Positions 2,203 through 8,200 of a stretch of 32,000 bases of DNA are shown one piece after another. Every line of letters starts with the position of its first letter. Within the stretch, counting starts at the first letter, position 1. The translations under genes and the position numbers were made by a program. This DNA is from Zygophlyctis sp. KS116 (Eukaryota; Fungi; Chytridiomycota), in assembly GCA_054661495.1 (NCBI GenBank), contig BAAFSQ010000076.1, positions 1 through 32,000 on the forward strand, written 5' to 3'. Below the pieces are notes generated by a model. That model was not told where the DNA came from and made no database searches. It saw nothing but the letters and a program-made list of their open reading frames with translations.

Positions 2203-3054
2203 TTACAAACTTGGACGCTTCTTAATTGATAGTAAGAGAAGCAGTTCTTCCATTTTTTCATCTTGATTCACTACCATATCCTTGAACCTTGATATATTTG
2301 CCTTTGTTTTTTCTATTTCTCTTTTAAAATTTTCAGATTTCCTAAATTGATCTGAAATATCCGTTTTAGTTTTTTTAATTTCTGGTGAATCATACTTTTG
2401 AATCACATAATCATCCTCTGAAGCCAGTAATTCCTTAAATTTCAATTGATTTTTTTCAATTTCTTGATATAGATCTTGTAGTTCTGGCCAAGCGGGTAAT
2501 TTATTCAATAGCCAATCTTTTAAAAAACCAATCTTCCCCTTGAATAAAAGAAGCATCCTTTGTCTTTCATCCAGGGTATCGTTAAGCTCCTTCTTATACA
2601 ATTTTCCTATATAAACAACCAATTCTTTTTCCAACTCCTTGACTGTAGATTTACATCCTAATATTTCTTTTTGCATGATTTCTCTCCTTTCCTTCAAACT
2701 TTTAATCTGCTGAAAGAGAGTATGGAGCATTCCTCCATGACCATTTTCACAAGTTAACTTTTGAATCTTGTATTTTAGAAATTCCTTTTCCTTTTGAATA
2801 TTAGATAGTCCTTTTATAACCAGAGAGTATTCATTCTTAATATCTGAGAGCAGATCTTCATAAATTGTAAAATGTGAAATAAATTCAGAAAATAGGTATT
2901 CGATTTCTTGCAAATCCATTGTATTTCCAATCCTGTCTTGTATTTCCACTAGAGATAAATGCCTATGAGATTTTCCTATTTTTGGCAAGTAAAATGCTCT
3001 TTTTCTTCTGGGAAGGAATGAATAATCAATTGTAGATGGAATACTAAGTTTCAT
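2203..3054 (-). CDS. Coiled-coil protein, probable TSNAXIP1_N-domain (TSNAXIP1/C6orf118-like) protein, about 283 aa
   Basis: Single long ORF rich in K/E/L heptads. The segment LFSEFISHFTIYEDLLSDIKNEY resembles the TSNAXIP1 N-terminal domain (recognised from memory, not searched). The first ATG is at 3054; the start is uncertain. Confidence 0.6.
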   Translation of the reverse strand: MKLSIPSTIDYSFLPRRKRAFYLPKIGKSHRHLSLVEIQDRIGNTMDLQEIEYLFSEFISHFTIYEDLLSDIKNEYSLVIKGLSNIQKEKEFLKYKIQKLTCENGHGGMLHTLFQQIKSLKERREIMQKEILGCKSTVKELEKELVVYIGKLYKKELNDTLDERQRMLLLFKGKIGFLKDWLLNKLPAWPELQDLYQEIEKNQLKFKELLASEDDYVIQKYDSPEIKKTKTDISDQFRKSENFKREIEKTKANISRFKDMVVNQDEKMEELLLLLSIKKRPSL

Positions 3055-3081
3055 TACCAAATCTATTATAGATGTTGTACG

Positions 3082-5173
3082 TCATTCGGATAATTCAAGA
3101 TCATCGGACTCTTCACGATGATGTGATTTTATAATGAGACTGCCAATCCAAATTGATAAAAGAGCAGCAGCATATTTTCCATAAGGCCTAATTTTAATCT
3201 AAAATTCAAGATACATCATGCGATTCTTAAACCATAGGCTAGATACTTGGCTATTAAAGTATCTTTCGGCCTGTGATAAAATACGATCAGAAGGAGGTTG
3301 ACCATTACTTTCATTAAATTAAATAAATATACGATAGAGCAGCTACTTGCTTGATCTTTGAGGAAGATCTAAAATTAAAATTAAAATTCTTACATCCAAA
3401 TCATTTCATGATTAAACCAACCATTCCAATTTTTGTGCTTATTATAACTTTTTATTACTAAAGTTCACTTACATTTCTTTCAAAGAATTCCAACCTTTAG
3501 AAAGTTTTTCACTATTGAGGTCTTGATTATCGATTGAATCAATTCTTAATTTATTAGTGATAAGCTTTTACATTTCCGATAATCGCATCAAACCTTCGAT
3601 TTTTTGTGGATCTTCTAAATTGTTGTGACTTAAATCACTTTTCGAATTATTAGTACTTATTTACATGATATATAGGTTTTGTAGGCCATTCAAGATCCTT
3701 TCTGGTACTTCTCCCGTCAAGTGATTATTTTGCAGGTACAATTCATTTAGTTCTATCAATCCTCCCATCTCTTCCGGTACAAGTCCCTCGAGGTAATTTT
3801 GGTGAAGATCACTATAATTAACCCAAATTTTAATTGATTTACAGCTCCTTCAAGTTTTTCATATTTCCAATTTCCTTTGGAATATTTCCAGACAACCTGT
3901 TATTGTTCAAGTATCTTATAATCAGCTTAACTGTCTTACAGTCTTTCCAATTTTACTAAATTTCCAAGCTCGGTTGGAATAGAACCAGTAAAGTGATTAA
4001 ACTTTAAACTCCTTTCAAAATTAGTATAATATAGATACAAAAATTTCAATTCAGTCAATTGACTAACCCATGATGGAATAGATCCAGAAAATCTGTTATT
4101 ATGCAATACCCTTGAATTCATAAATTAAAAAACATACAATCTTTCCAGACTAGTCAGAGCCTCCAAATCTTTTGGGATAATTCCAGAAAATTGATTATTA
4201 CTTAGGTAACTTTTACAATTAGCTTGAACTATTTACAGCATCTGCAACTTTTCTAAATTTCCAATCTCGGACGGAATTGATCCCTTAAGCTTATTACCTG
4301 AAAGACTTCTATCGATTAGCTTCAACAATATGTACAGAAAAGTCAAAGTCTTCAAATTTCCAATTTCTTTGGGAATCTCTCCATTCAACTTGTTATTTTC
4401 CAACCAACTATCCTGAGTTATAAAAAAGCATACAGACTTGTAAGACTCGGACATAAAGTCGGAATCCTTCCAGAAAGAGCATTCATATACAAATGCCTAT
4501 TATTCAGATTATAACTACTTACAACTTTTGCAAGAATTCTAGATTCCCAATGGACTCTGGTATTTCTCCTTGCAGTTCATTCCTGTATAGAAAACTTTTA
4601 ATTAAAAGAGAAATGTACTTACATATTAACGATATTTTTCAAGTTTCCTATTTCTAAAGGAATCTTTCCATTTAATTGATTTCTTTCAAGATATCTTATA
4701 TTAGATCTACAAGATTACAATTCCTTTAAATTTATCAAATTCCCAATTTCAGCAGGTATTGATCCGTTTAATCTATTTCCTGAACAATCACTTTTATAAA
4801 TAATCCCAACTTACAGTTTTTCCAAATTAACCAAATTTGATATGCCGACTGGCAATGATCCGGATAGTTGATTATCTGAAAGATCACTTTGCATTAATAA
4901 TCCTAAATAATACAGATGCTTTAGATTTTTCAATTGACCAATCTCTAAAGGAATCTCTCCAAAAAGACCATCATGTTTCCAATTAATCTCAATAACCATT
5001 GAATCCTTAATAGTCACACCATGCACTGAATGCATTGAAACAGTTGTTTTTCCACCCATTTTCCTATAAATCGCCTTCACCAACTTGATCTCATTCATTT
5101 GATTCTGATAAGTAGAGTAAATTCCTAGAGGAAACAAGAGCCATAATGCAAAAATCCATCCATGATGCATCAT
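3082..5173 (-). CDS. LRR receptor-like protein: signal peptide, about 14-15 plant-type 24-aa LRRs, degenerate repeats, short hydrophobic segment and acidic tail; 19 exons, 538 aa
   Basis: N-terminus MMHHGWIFALWLLFPLGIYS. Repeats follow LxLxxNxLxGxIPxEIGNLxxLxxL. Introns (plus-strand coordinates): 4887-4913, 4791-4814, 4695-4718, 4595-4622, 4497-4522, 4408-4433, 4309-4335, 4210-4236, 4111-4137, 4012-4038, 3915-3939, 3812-3842, 3638-3664, 3545-3571, 3448-3472, 3369-3393, 3308-3332, 3188-3214. The spliced frame is open to TGA at 3084-3082. C-terminus YAAALLSIWIGSLIIKSHHREESDDLELSE. The last four introns are less certain because no repeat consensus guides them. Confidence 0.88.
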
Positions 5174-5190
5174 CCCGAATATTTTTAGAA

Positions 5191-5242
5191 TAAATTTGCA
5201 ATTATAAATTTGCAATTCATTGCTAATTTGTTGGCAAATTTA
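5191..5242. repeat. Direct and inverted repeat in the divergent LRR/ABCA intergenic region
   Basis: TAAATTTGCAATT occurs at 5191-5203 and 5205-5217, with an inverted partial copy GCAAATTTA at 5234-5242. Confidence 0.7.
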
Positions 5243-5282
5243 CTGAATGCATTTCTGGCAATCGTAATCAGCTACAATCATC

Positions 5283-8200
5283 ATGGCGAAAGTGTCGAAA
5301 GAGTAATTTTGTTTCTATTTTGTATTTATAGTTGCATATGTTCTGTAAAAAGTCCGAATTCGTCGACCGGTCAAGGCTTGTCCACCTACAAATTCATGAA
5401 TCAAATCCGTGCGGTTGCATTCAACAAGGTATCATATCAGAAGAGGCAGGTATTTACAAACATTTCATGTGTGTCAATCTGTCCAATGACAATTGTATTT
5501 TTATCTTGGGGGCTTGGATTGCTGATTCAATCTTTAATAACTCCTTCTAGACGGCTGGAAGAAAATCTATTTTGTTCAAACTTGTCCGATTTCTATAATT
5601 TAAATTACAGCTGTAAATTAAGTTGTTTTTTAACATTTTTAGATGGGGATGCATCCAATATCCCAAGGGCCAAAAACGATATCATCAAAAATACATTTAA
5701 TCCACCGTCAGTCTTTTTACCAAATTCATGTGTTTATTATTTTGGAAAAAGTACTTCATTTTCACTTCCGTTTCAAAATTACTCTGTAGAAACTATGCCA
5801 GAAATTAAGGATTCAACTTATTGGGGACAGCCTAGAGGTGGTTGGTTAGATTCAAACCTGGTAAATGTATCCGATCCTTTTCAACAGGATAAATTTAATA
5901 GACTGCTACTAATTCAACAAAAATCGTTTGTTATTTTAGCTTCAGATCCGAATTTACGAAATATAATAGGACCAGTGCAGTCGATACAGAAATTAAATAT
6001 CACACAATTCTCATCAGCAAAAGACAATAACAATTTTACAGACTTGATATCTGCGATTCCCTATCGGTATTATCTTAATATTTCTTCATTGGATGTTACT
6101 TTGACTAATTTGGAATTTGTAAAAGTTCCATACTTTGAATGGTTTCCTTTCAATACGACTTTGGAAGGAATTGATGATTATTTTAATGATTTGATTCTAA
6201 ATGTTTTAGAAAGGATTAATAATGTGGATAAAATAGCGCTTATTCAAGATAACTCAGCAACTGAAACGCTATCTGAATATTATATAAACTCTGCTCTGAC
6301 TGTAACAGATTTACCATACGGTGCACTTTATTTTTCTAGCATAAATTATTCTAGTCTCGATTTTAAGTACACGTTGGTTTTTGGAAGTGATTCAAGGATA
6401 AGTAGTGGAGCTTGGAATTTTCCGGATGCTGGTTTAAGACGGATTATTATGCAGAGTCAACTTTCTAATGCTTTTTTAAGGTCGAGTGGAGATAAGTGGA
6501 AGGATTTTGAGATATCAGGAGGACTCAGAATGTTTCCAATGATAGGGACCAATGAATTTAAAATACCCGTGGGCAGTTTAATTGGAAGAATTGTTTATCC
6601 TTTTGGGGTCTCTTTTCTGTTACCAATATTTGTAGTCATCTTGGTAAAGGAAAAGGAAAATAGGATACAAATTATGACCAAAATGAATGGCCTACATTCC
6701 GCTGTGTACTATCTAGGTCATTATATACATTTTTATATTTTGCATATTCTTTCATCCGCTGTTTTCTTATTATCAGGGTATATATCTCAAATGGAAATGT
6801 TTACAATGACTTCCTGGGACGTATTGATCATCGTATGGCTTACATGGGGATTTGCACAAATAGCTACTGCATTTTTATTATCAGTGTTTTTCCAGCAGTC
6901 AAGCTTGGCCCTAGGTATTTTGATTAAACTAAGAAGAAGTCTTGACATTTGTCGCTACATTGACTGGTGTTATTGTGTCGAATGCAGTTGATTTTATTTT
7001 TGTTTCTGCAAATCCACCATTAATATACATGATTTGGCCGCCCTTTGCATTTTACAGATGTATTTCAGTTATGAATGCTGCAACATTAGGAGCTGCCGTT
7101 CAGGCACAATTTGGAGGAAATAGTGATGGTGTTACTGTAAATCCGTACAAATTAAGCTACTTAAAACCGGGAGACGAGGTTTTTAACGCAATTATGATGA
7201 TGTATGGATGTACAGTGTTTTTCCTTATCATGACAGCTTATTTAAGTCAAGTGCTACCTTCCAAATTTGGCGTCGCTAAGAGATGGGATTTTCCTCTAGA
7301 GTGGATTTATAAAATATTTACAAAACCTGAAAATAAAGTTGTGAATGGTCTGATTAAAGAACCAAGTGTGCATGGAGACCAGGATGTAATAGAAGAACGC
7401 CAAAGAGTTGATTTGGGACAAGTATCAAAAGATTCGCCTTTAATAATTAAGCATTTACACAAGTCTTTTGGAAAGAAAGTTGCTGTCGATAGTATCTCTT
7501 TTTCCGTAGAAAAAGGAATTGTATTTGGCCTATTGGGAGAAAATGGTGCTGGCAAAACTACCTTGATTTCTGTTTTAACAGGTCTTTTTTCTTGCGACTC
7601 TGGCACAGCTATCTTGGCTGGATACGATACTTCAACAGAAATGAAATTTATTCATAAAAGAATTGGCATTTGTCCTCAATACGACATTCATTGGGACGAC
7701 CTTACTATTGAAGAGCACTTACTTTTTTACGCAAGATTAAAAGACTCACCAATCAAGTTTGAAAAAGAAATTGTAGAAAAATCTTTACAGGATGTCGGAC
7801 TTGCTGGTATGGGACATCGTCTTGCACGTAGTCTATCTGGCGGTGAAAAGAGAAGACTCTCTATAGCCATGGCACTAGTGGGAGATCCTTGCCTTGTATT
7901 TTTAGATGAACCAACGACTGGACTTGACCCAGAAGTACGTAGAATTGTTTGGAAAATCATTCAACAATGTAGAAAAAGTCAAACTTTTCTATTAACCACT
8001 CATTCAATGGAAGAAGCAGAAGTTTTATGTCAAAGAATTGGTATAATGTCAAGGGGAAATCTAGAATGTATTGGTTCACCACTTCATTTAAAGAAACTGT
8101 ATGGAACTGGTTTCAAAATAACTGTCAAATACCTTGACCAAGAATTAGCCAAGACTTTTATGAGCAATTTACTAAATTTGTATTGCGAAACTTGGTCCTT

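Follow-up and report, generated by a model that had tools for sequence, protein, structure and literature searches.

A predominantly one-repeat-per-exon leucine-rich repeat gene of a freshwater chytrid, probably encoding an old and conserved receptor-like membrane protein

The window analysed here, a stretch of 32,000 nucleotides of contig BAAFSQ010000076.1 from the chytrid Zygophlyctis sp. KS116, carries on its minus strand (5173..3082) a leucine-rich repeat (LRR) gene that is probably an old, single-copy, conserved gene of a freshwater chytrid, encoding a type-I membrane protein similar to the plant LRR-RLPs and having no kinase. The initial annotation had proposed a candidate diversifiable recognition or immune receptor at this locus, but the gene we describe is single copy, old, colinear between relatives and under purifying selection.

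The exon model is a prediction from the DNA, made with a splice-aware dynamic programme and then curated by hand, and it is supported by two orthologous loci, one near (L033) and one distant (L036), both from other metagenomes. The coding region (3082..5173, minus strand) opens with an ATG at 5173-5171 and closes with a TGA at 3084-3082, in agreement with the limits first annotated, and its 19 exons (E1 to E19) and 18 micro-introns, of 24-31 nt and all GTA..AG, give 538 codons before the stop. Translation and ortholog alignment indicate that E1 (260 nt, 4914..5173) encodes a hydrophobic, signal-peptide-like N-terminus, an N-terminal cap without Cys and the first LRR. Four single-LRR exons of 72 nt, with orthologous exons in L036, follow at 4523..4886 (E2 4886-4815, E3 4790-4719, E4 4694-4623 and E5 4594-4523); the introns between them have 24, 24 and 28 nt. 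E6 (4434..4496) was curated as a shortened LRR exon of 63 nt, or 21 residues; its counterpart in L036, the best-matching exon there, has 72 nt. The model and the comparison with L036 then give six more single-LRR exons, each of 72 nt, at 3843..4407 (E7 4407-4336, E8 4308-4237, E9 4209-4138, E10 4110-4039, E11 4011-3940 and E12 3914-3843). E13 (147 nt, 3665..3811) holds two LRRs, of 72 and 75 nt, as judged from a Pfam LRR_1 match of 25.2 bits, a phmmer search of the PDB and L036. The degenerate terminal LRR-like units at 3473..3637 are seen in the translations of E14 (66 nt, 3637-3572) and E15 (72 nt, 3544-3473), which have 69 and 57 nt in L036. A non-LRR stalk or juxtamembrane region (3215..3447) is made up of E16 (54 nt, 3447-3394), E17 (36 nt, 3368-3333) and E18 (93 nt, 3307-3215), with 54, 39 and 90 nt in L036, and E19 (106 nt, 3082..3187) encodes a putative transmembrane helix, found by hydropathy and conserved as a segment in L036 and in locus L040, then a 15-residue acidic and His-rich tail and the TGA.

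Between this stop and the ATG (3054-3052) of a downstream TSNAXIP1-like gene lies a minus-strand spacer of 27 nt (3055..3081), while a divergent spacer of about 109 nt (5174..5282) leads to an ABC-transporter gene on the plus strand. Read-through fusion with the TSNAXIP1-like ORF was considered and ruled out: TGA terminates other genes here, and the several stops between the two genes in L036 count against it as well. A single 165-nt intron in place of E16 and E17 was also rejected: L033 preserves the two exons and the three introns of 25 nt that go with them, and counterparts of all these occur in L036. A search of sequencing runs found the locus in DNA contigs only and in no RNA run, and in the public databases the gene is represented by its first-exon ORF alone.

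Our reconstruction arrives at the same layout that had been claimed at first, with all 18 introns in phase 2, all 17 internal exons multiples of three and eleven of them exactly 72 nt. The LRR introns all interrupt the codon for the first Leu in LxLxxN, so that every repeat is indeed cut at the same codon. All internal exons, E16, E17 and E18 included, are symmetric (2-2), and the loss or doubling of any one would leave the reading frame intact. The uniformity of phase is beyond what would be expected by chance, because the introns of neighbouring housekeeping genes in the window, which have similar size and signals (25-30 nt, GTA..AG), are of mixed phase where they join long ORFs (about nine in phase 0, five in phase 1 and five in phase 2). 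Retention would introduce an in-frame stop for 15 of the 18 introns of the LRR gene, the remaining three being stop-free and 27 nt each.

The product contains 14 canonical and about two degenerate 24-residue plant-type LRRs with the consensus xLxxNxLxGxIPxEIGNLxxLxx+L. When the 11 exon peptides are aligned, N5, G9 and P12 are invariant and L2, L18 and L21 are at least 90% conserved; the repeats belong to the plant-specific-type class of 24 residues (LxxLxLxxNxLxGxIPxxLGxLxx). In the phmmer search of the PDB with E13, the top 40 or more matches are all plant LRR-RLK or LRR-RLP ectodomains, among them GSO1, FLS2, PEPR1, BRI1, ERL1 and RXEG1. Very good matches of the LRR part are found in giant LRR proteins of bacteria (Bacteroidota) too; the repeat type is therefore not restricted to plants. 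A profile of three E1 orthologs searched against 1.84 billion proteins returned mostly long multi-LRR proteins, matched in the LRR part only; the sole full-length matches were the two known first-exon ORFs, and the top matches carrying names, in the sample inspected, were bacterial. Searches with E1 found no relatives in the JGI metagenome contigs and only generic LRR clusters in the ESM Atlas. An early-diverging, chytrid-like fungal host, as first suggested, is supported by the neighbouring Yju2 gene, whose best named matches are in Chytridiomycota.

Comparison with the near ortholog shows a conserved gene. L033 is syntenic with the window and colinear over the whole set of 19 exons and 18 introns, with 96.9% identity in exons and 93.0% in introns; the only length changes are of 1 nt and fall within predicted introns 2 and 14. 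From this pair we obtain a dN/dS of 0.27 at a dS of 0.078, although only 50 substitutions enter the estimate. L036 likewise comprises 19 exons, its 18 introns being phase 2 without exception, and it differs from the LRR gene by one gain or loss of a repeat exon and one loss or gain of an intron, no further exon or intron change of this kind having been seen between the species. One of E8-E12 lacks a counterpart in L036 (E10 stays unpaired when the exons are aligned), and L036 has an intron between the two repeats of E13 that is absent in the window; about half of the LRR exons have a firm ortholog in L036, and the others are matched to it by position. The tandem order of the LRR gene and the TSNAXIP1-like gene is conserved in L033, L036 and L040. 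Contigs from four other metagenomes contain no rearrangement joints at the locus, and the clade is present in samples from lake, estuary and wastewater. Single-nucleotide differences within populations comprise nine synonymous, four nonsynonymous and five intronic changes, and the only place with indels in another population is the spacer to the ABC-transporter gene (5203-5218, run X4).

Conservation extends to the putative binding face. In the near ortholog, just one nonsynonymous change is found among the 70 face codons (175 face sites), and none of the population variants is on the face. Against L036, face identity is 40% between orthologous exon pairs and 12% between non-orthologous ones (permutation p = 5e-5), while the other variable positions show 23% and 20%, respectively, making the face the best-conserved repeat-specific feature of the gene. 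The check for diversifying selection recommended in the initial annotation thus gave the opposite result, with face residues kept between orthologous repeats under purifying selection.

The genome-wide exon search for paralogs that had also been recommended was carried out on 20 loci and a list of genome matches. In the 12.7-Mb genome, E18 and E19 match only themselves, so the transmembrane and tail exons are single copy, and the cap part of E1 (residues 46-85) has 28 weaker relatives. The repeat exons, or cassettes, belong to a genome-wide family of 535 candidates. Of 173 cassettes in the fetched loci, 170 are 72 nt long and lie between AG and GTA in the same register, giving at least 170 such exons. 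The cassettes of the LRR gene are old: they are 52% identical to one another, and their best matches among the other fetched cassettes reach 58-72%, with a mean of 66%. A young family, in contrast, shows 83-91% identity between loci. The two share the 72-nt exon, the cut codon, micro-introns (24-31 nt) and a homologous N-cap, and L018 on contig C778, a member of the young family, carries a hydrophobic anchor and tail at its end as the LRR gene does. They differ in that young members have Cys-rich N- and C-caps, whereas the LRR gene is Cys-poor, and in that the young scaffold is nearly invariant (NQLSGSIPAEIGNL), whereas that of the LRR gene has diverged to 52-66% identity. The face evolves fast in the young family (omega 1.36 for face codons and 0.42 for the rest) and is under purifying selection in the LRR gene. 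The LRR gene is an old, static relative of the young cassette family, membrane-bound by prediction.

That prediction is based on the two ends of the protein. The hydrophobic N-terminus is retained in L036, and a single C-terminal hydrophobic segment of about 15-17 residues (residues ~507-525; mean Kyte-Doolittle value 1.55 over 17 residues) stands at the same place in the LRR gene, L036 and L040, with a Lys and then a charged tail after it. The tail has 15 residues here and 47 in L036, and as it is conserved in neither length nor sequence, no signalling motif is evident in it. Pfam found no domain in the tail exons, E19 included, and no LRRNT_2 match in E1 of the LRR gene, of L036 or of one young paralog. 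There is no kinase domain in the gene, its stop lying 27 nt before the ATG of the next gene, and no cassette array has one of the kinase matches scored in the genome directly downstream on its own strand, the nearest case being about 5 kb away on C117. The plant-type LRRs, hydrophobic segment and short tail of the initial annotation all stand, and where it placed a signal peptide there is a signal-peptide-like start.

It is rather unlikely that the product is not transmembrane. It might be secreted or wall-bound, either by removal of the C-terminal stretch or by retention of intron 18, which would stop translation ahead of the hydrophobic segment, or it might be an intracellular LRR scaffold with incidental hydrophobic ends. 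The segment is short, the whole protein has only two Cys and one N-glycosylation sequon, its caps lack the Cys pairs usual for extracellular LRR caps, and in most young paralogs the C-terminus is a cap with Cys and no anchor. Yet the segment, the Lys and the charged tail have all been kept in the three loci while the tail itself drifted, purifying selection acts on the tail exons taken together (dN/dS 0.26 in the near-ortholog comparison), and persistence of the N-terminus in L036 points the same way. A GPI anchor was ruled out because a charged tail comes after the hydrophobic segment; a hydrophilic tail of 15-47 residues in that position speaks against a GPI signal. A membrane-anchored protein is the preferred reading.

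A recognition or immune receptor diversified by skipping, duplicating and swapping exons, either somatically through alternative splicing or through frequent germline exchange with paralogs, now seems quite improbable. The symmetric exons would permit it, a large paralogous cassette family with fast-evolving face codons exists, and one repeat exon does differ between the LRR gene and L036. Colinearity with L033, near-colinearity with L036 and the lack of joints in four metagenomes nonetheless speak against a diversifiable gene, as do its age, its single copy and a face more conserved than the scaffold. Under intron-definition splicing, moreover, genomes with micro-introns are expected to show intron retention rather than exon skipping. 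There is also a slim chance that the protein acts as a fixed surface partner, for docking or as a co-receptor, of the fast-evolving secreted LRR family, or that regulated isoforms differing in repeat number arise by exon skipping or by retention of the three stop-free introns; if either were true, a chytrid would possess two tiers of LRR recognition, both made from one and the same 72-nt exon module. That the locus represents a relic in decay or a mis-assembly of repeat DNA, with exons that merely reflect a choice of GT..AG pairs preserving an open frame, is highly improbable even for a DNA-based model from a programme that rewards open frames, given the low dN/dS, exons more conserved than introns, frame-breaking indels confined to introns, a 19-exon plan that stays open in L036 and near-identical contigs of the locus in independent studies.

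The old conserved gene can be compared with several known systems. It shares 24-residue NxLxGxIP repeats with the ectodomains of plant LRR-RLPs and LRR-RLKs (RXEG1, TMM, FLS2, GSO1, BRI1), as well as the plant RLP plan of a signal peptide (here a signal-peptide-like N-terminus), cap, LRR solenoid, one transmembrane helix (putative here) and a short tail free of kinase. What sets it apart from these plant proteins is that its N-cap has neither an LRRNT_2 match nor Cys pairs, that its hydrophobic segment lacks GxxxG, and that it contains no island domain and no kinase. The likeness is one of features, the repeats being too short and convergent for a tree of common descent. The 72-nt exons may also resemble those of plant genes of the SERK/ERECTA type, as the initial annotation proposed. 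In the ROCO genes of Ectocarpus and Saccharina, with their 'type I' LRR exons, each LRR occupies a 72-nt exon and introns are in phase 2 throughout (PMC3341825, PMC11378527), and the resemblance to brown algae noted initially holds in exon length, one LRR per exon and phase. It fails at the cut position, since the algal exon opens with the G..P portion of its repeat, as GxxPxxLxxxxxLxxLxLxxNxLx (PMC3341825), whereas the cut here is at the first Leu of LxLxxN. The brown-algal products, which are LRR-ROC-COR proteins of the cytosol, come from genes with strong shuffling and splice variants, while the present protein has a predicted membrane anchor, no ROC-COR domain and a static exon order. In Tetrahymena, the LRR genes consist of tandem arrays of equal-length 90-bp exons; over 96% of the introns are in phase 2, the codon at the junction is split, and the genes fall into old and young age groups (PMC6564038). 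The gene described here resembles a member of the old group beside a young, expanding one, although Tetrahymena is a ciliate, its exons have 90 bp rather than 72, its LRRs are of another subtype and its genes number thousands rather than dozens.

Fungi have long been described as nearly devoid of LRR surface receptors, and Soanes and Talbot found a handful of proteins with LRRs and a transmembrane segment in Batrachochytrium dendrobatidis and zygomycetes (PMC2939053). In a Lobulomycetales MAG, LRR-RLK orthogroups are the most abundant families (PMC13618815). The portions of these two sources (PMC2939053, PMC13618815) considered here make no mention of an exon-per-repeat architecture.

As an old, conserved surface protein, the product would be directed into the secretory pathway by its hydrophobic N-terminus, and the cap, 14 canonical and about two degenerate repeats would form a curved extracellular solenoid, with the single hydrophobic helix as membrane anchor and the short acidic and His-rich tail having no catalytic domain. 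Each repeat has concave-face residues (xxLxLxx) of its own, and these are retained from one species to another; a single conserved ligand or partner is therefore the most likely binding target, for example in adhesion, in sensing of a substrate or host, or in a co-receptor role. Any signalling would then pass through another protein. The all-phase-2, one-repeat-per-exon layout may go back to ancient tandem duplication of one 72-nt exon together with one micro-intron, a unit that would also have built the large young family of the same genome, and in the LRR gene it appears to have permitted only slow changes by whole repeats, one exon and one intron between species.

A freshwater chytrid lineage thus keeps a plant-type LRR protein, with a predicted membrane anchor, under selection across species, beside a large and expanding family made of the same exon module. 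Exon-per-repeat genes of this kind also hold a lesson for annotation, as ORF-based callers catch only fragments of them. The old static gene and the young dynamic family offer a natural contrast on the evolutionary role of a symmetric exon layout, and the pair parallels the age groups of the Tetrahymena LRR genes.

The ATG at 5173 (minus strand) opens the LRR gene (5173..3082), and a hydrophobic stretch comes next when the reverse complement of 5300..3000 is read. Past that stretch, open stretches of 23-24 codons with the motif xLxxNxLxGxIP recur every 96-103 nt, with stops in all frames between them. A dynamic programme (GT..AG introns of 18-70 nt allowed), combined with hand curation on the repeat register, gave a model of 19 exons, all on the minus strand. 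E1 (5173-4914, 260 nt) is followed by E2 to E5 (4886-4815, 4790-4719, 4694-4623 and 4594-4523; 72 nt each), E6 (4496-4434, 63 nt) and E7 to E12 (4407-4336, 4308-4237, 4209-4138, 4110-4039, 4011-3940 and 3914-3843; again 72 nt each). E13 (3811-3665, 147 nt) holds two repeats, while E14 (3637-3572, 66 nt) and E15 (3544-3473, 72 nt) are degenerate repeats. The tail is encoded by E16, E17 and E18 (3447-3394, 3368-3333 and 3307-3215; 54, 36 and 93 nt) and E19 (3187-3082, 106 nt). Predicted introns 1 to 18 are 27, 24, 24, 28, 26, 26, 27, 27, 27, 27, 25, 31, 27, 27, 25, 25, 25 and 27 nt long, and in this model all 18 are GTA..AG and phase 2. The initial annotation had counted 18 introns, all in phase 2, 17 internal exons divisible by three and eleven exons of 72 nt, and the rebuilt model reproduces each count exactly. 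Retention would bring in an in-frame stop from 15 of the 18 predicted introns. Introns 1, 7 and 10 (4913-4887, 4335-4309 and 4038-4012), each of 27 nt, carry no such stop, thus their retention would add nine residues rather than truncate the protein.

As control introns we considered those needed to join the long ORFs of neighbouring housekeeping genes (Tra1, UTP10/HEATR1, the ABC transporter and others, by Pfam). These are 25-30 nt long and GTA..AG, like those of the LRR gene, but their phases are mixed (approximately 9, 5 and 5 for phases 0, 1 and 2), so the uniform phase 2 belongs to the LRR gene and is not genome-wide. Among public proteins, the E1 ORF has a relative at 90% identity (P0122) on a 20-kb ENA metagenome scaffold, the near ortholog locus L033. 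This locus has the neighbours seen in the window: the LRR gene is flanked at one end by U3snoRNP10/UTP10, an ATP-synthase-C/VMA3 gene and the ABC transporter, and at the other by the TSNAXIP1-like gene and citrate synthase. All 19 exons and all 18 introns are colinear, and GTA..AG is kept in every L033 intron that has sequence coverage; a gap around E9 and intron 9 consists of N in the L033 scaffold. Identity is 96.9% in exons and 93.0% in introns. Length changes other than by multiples of three are limited to one added nucleotide in each of the predicted introns 2 and 14; within exons, the sole indel is a 9-nt deletion in E1 that keeps the frame. Coding exons separated by non-coding introns, as in the model, would be expected to show such a pattern.

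The initial annotation had proposed a diversifiable receptor, and the evidence on copy number, exon order and selection all goes against this proposal. No second copy of the tail exons E18 and E19 is found in the genome. A profile of the gene's eleven exon peptides (alignment A1) does return 535 candidate cassettes (72-nt one-repeat LRR exons) genome-wide, but the cassettes of this gene are old and diverged, with a mean nucleotide identity of 52% internally and 55% to other loci, and a best match of each to another fetched cassette of 58-72% (mean 66%). The corresponding between-locus mean best match in a young cassette family of the same genome is 83-91%. Besides the colinearity with L033, the locus is near-identical, where covered, in contigs of four other studies (freshwater, estuary, wastewater and lake), and no rearranged breakpoints at the gene were found in the covered parts of those contigs. 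The 18 differences seen there comprise 9 synonymous, 4 nonsynonymous (none on the concave xxLxLxx face, the putative binding face) and 5 intronic changes. The only between-population indels in the stretch compared (9, 1, 1 and 2 nt missing; run X4) lie at 5203-5218, in the 109-nt spacer between the divergent LRR and ABC-transporter genes. In comparison with L033, dN/dS is 0.27 overall, 0.21 in the LRR scaffold and 0.26 in the tail exons (50 substitutions), and the 70 face codons show a single nonsynonymous change, with a dN of 0.0057 versus 0.0189 for the scaffold.

A more distant comparison is provided by the TSNAXIP1-like ORF downstream of the LRR gene, which has relatives at approximately 60-65% identity, one of them on a 7-kb Logan contig (the distant ortholog locus L036). 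The 2.3 kb upstream of that ORF carry the same kind of LRR gene, with a curated model of 19 exons (329 nt, eleven of 72 nt, then 84, 69, 57, 54, 39, 90 and 195 nt) and 18 introns, all in phase 2. Two L036 introns (599-627 and 1291-1319) start with GTT and GTG; GTA is otherwise universal. The exon-level alignment is colinear, and for E4, E6, E7, both repeats of E13 and E15 to E19 no L036 exon matches better than the positional partner. Of the pairings between LRR exons, about half rest on position and are not significant individually. Between E8 and E12 the alignment leaves E10 unpaired, the window gene having one LRR exon more than L036 there. The two repeats fused in E13 (3665-3811) occupy separate exons of 72 and 84 nt at L036:1517-1700, so that a micro-intron has been precisely lost or gained at a cassette junction. 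Identity of face residues is 40% in orthologous exon pairs and 12% in non-orthologous ones (permutation p = 5e-5), while non-face variable positions have no ortholog excess (23% versus 20%, p = 0.31); each repeat is thus defined by its face, which is kept. Taken together, these sequence comparisons show a conserved, single-copy gene, predicted to be spliced, under purifying selection and with a conserved, repeat-specific putative binding face.

The tandem pair of LRR and TSNAXIP1-like genes is conserved in L033, L036 and a third relative, L040, which keeps the end of E18 and the last exon. The ATG of the TSNAXIP1_N-domain gene lies 27 nt past the TGA of the LRR gene, in the same frame and across a stop-free spacer (3052-3084, minus strand). 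A read-through fusion of the two was considered and rejected; TGA ends other genes of the window and several stops separate the two genes in L036, thus the arrangement reflects tight tandem packing. In a JGI contig with a TSNAXIP1 ortholog (L037), a threefold tandem repeat of an approximately 39-nt unit (40-160) stands upstream of that ortholog, where the last LRR exon would be, so the synteny is not universal among relatives.

The predicted product has 538 residues. Its N-terminus is hydrophobic, as is that of L036 (alignment A2, E1 of the orthologs), and its cap is homologous to that of the paralogs, yet has no cysteines. There follow 14 canonical repeats and the two degenerate ones, approximately 90 residues from E16-E18 with no recognisable domain, and the sole strongly hydrophobic internal segment (residues ~507-525, mean Kyte-Doolittle 1.55 over 17 residues), before an acidic/His-rich C-terminal tail of 15 residues. 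The hydrophobic segment and short tail noted earlier are both present. L036 and L040 likewise have the segment with a Lys behind it and a charged tail rich in His, Asp and Glu, although tail length and sequence differ among the three. Pfam finds LRR_1, LRR_8 and LRR_4 alone on the exons, and no domain on the cap and tail. With E13 as query, every one of the best 40 solved structures is a plant LRR-RLK, RLP or LRX ectodomain (among them GSO1, FLS2, PEPR1, MIK2, BRI1, ERL1/2, HAESA-like, TDR, PSKR1, RXEG1 and TMM), which together with the xLxxNxLxGxIP motif agrees with the plant-type (GxIP) repeats first described and places the repeat in the 24-residue 'plant-specific' type. A profile including the first repeat matches giant LRR proteins best, the sampled named ones being from Bacteroidota; judged by such matches, this type is not exclusive to plants.

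The host genome (12.7 Mb in 1175 contigs) comes from freshwater metagenomes, and the best named matches of the neighbouring Yju2 are to Chytridiomycota only (45-56% identity), ahead of other early-diverging fungi. All 150 scored cassette candidates lie in open frames, mostly of 25-40 codons (up to 142), on about 45 contigs. A census of 20 loci, which is a lower bound for the young family, comprises 173 cassettes, of which 170 measure exactly 72 nt. All 173 lie between an AG and a GTA at one common register, and the introns between them are 24-31 nt (mode 29). The scaffold is almost invariant (NQLSGSIPAEIGNL), while exon-peptide positions 1, 3, 4, 22 and 23, rich in Tyr, Trp, Asp, Ser, Arg and Asn, are hypervariable. 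These positions are the xxLxLxx face, which straddles the intron, with two of the five positions on one exon and three on the exon after it. Across 57 independent nearest-neighbour cassette pairs, 48 of them between different loci, face codons have a dN of 0.363 and an omega of 1.36, versus 0.42 elsewhere. Complete paralogs (local models) have a signal peptide, a Cys-rich cap, a variable number of 72-nt LRR exons and a Cys-containing C-cap.

Several features of individual loci deserve mention. Young-family introns (L013-L032; C136, C770, C543, C683, C716, C778 and others) are 81% identical even in random pairs, and the many members on short contigs suggest assembly breaks in the family. In L018 (G000:C778, minus strand) a C-cap with Cys precedes a hydrophobic segment and a Lys-rich tail, so the family may have gained, or retained, membrane anchoring on more than one occasion. 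The L018 anchor is unrelated in sequence to E19. L015 (G000:C543, minus strand) has an extra Cys-rich domain, a last exon of approximately 170 residues past the LRR array. L004 (G000:C48) and L011 (G000:C540) are other plant-type LRR genes with three or four repeats per exon, thus some GxIP-type LRR genes of this genome do not consist of single-repeat cassettes. The proteins of L001-L003 and L005-L010 are LRR proteins of the ordinary intracellular type.

Several groups are known to have LRR exons of equal length together with phase-2 introns. The brown-alga ROCO genes, to which the gene had been likened, also have 72-nt LRR exons and phase-2 introns, but the algal exons start at GxxP and encode cytosolic proteins (PMC3341825, PMC11378527). 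Tetrahymena LRR genes have 90-bp exons, more than 96% phase-2 introns, and old and young age groups (PMC6564038), and vertebrate gonadotropin receptors are a further case (cited in PMC11378527). LRR proteins with a transmembrane segment have been reported as all but missing from fungi, apart from a few in a chytrid and in zygomycetes (PMC2939053), and in a recent report on a chytrid MAG the most abundant families are LRR-RLK orthogroups (PMC13618815). The window gene thus belongs to known kinds, the exon-cassette LRR genes and, as a putative surface protein, the RLP-like LRR proteins. It differs from the named families in cap, kinase and ROC-COR features.

We suggest that the product is a type-I surface protein whose solenoid would bind one conserved ligand or partner. 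No adjoining kinase or catalytic tail was found, and therefore a role in adhesion or docking, or one exerted via a co-receptor, would be expected. The exon layout is best read as left over from the tandem duplication of a unit made up of exon and intron. It tolerates whole-repeat indels and intron loss, with one case of each between species. The best reading is that this layout is not being used for rapid change in the window gene, which by sequence comparison is a static member beside a young family.
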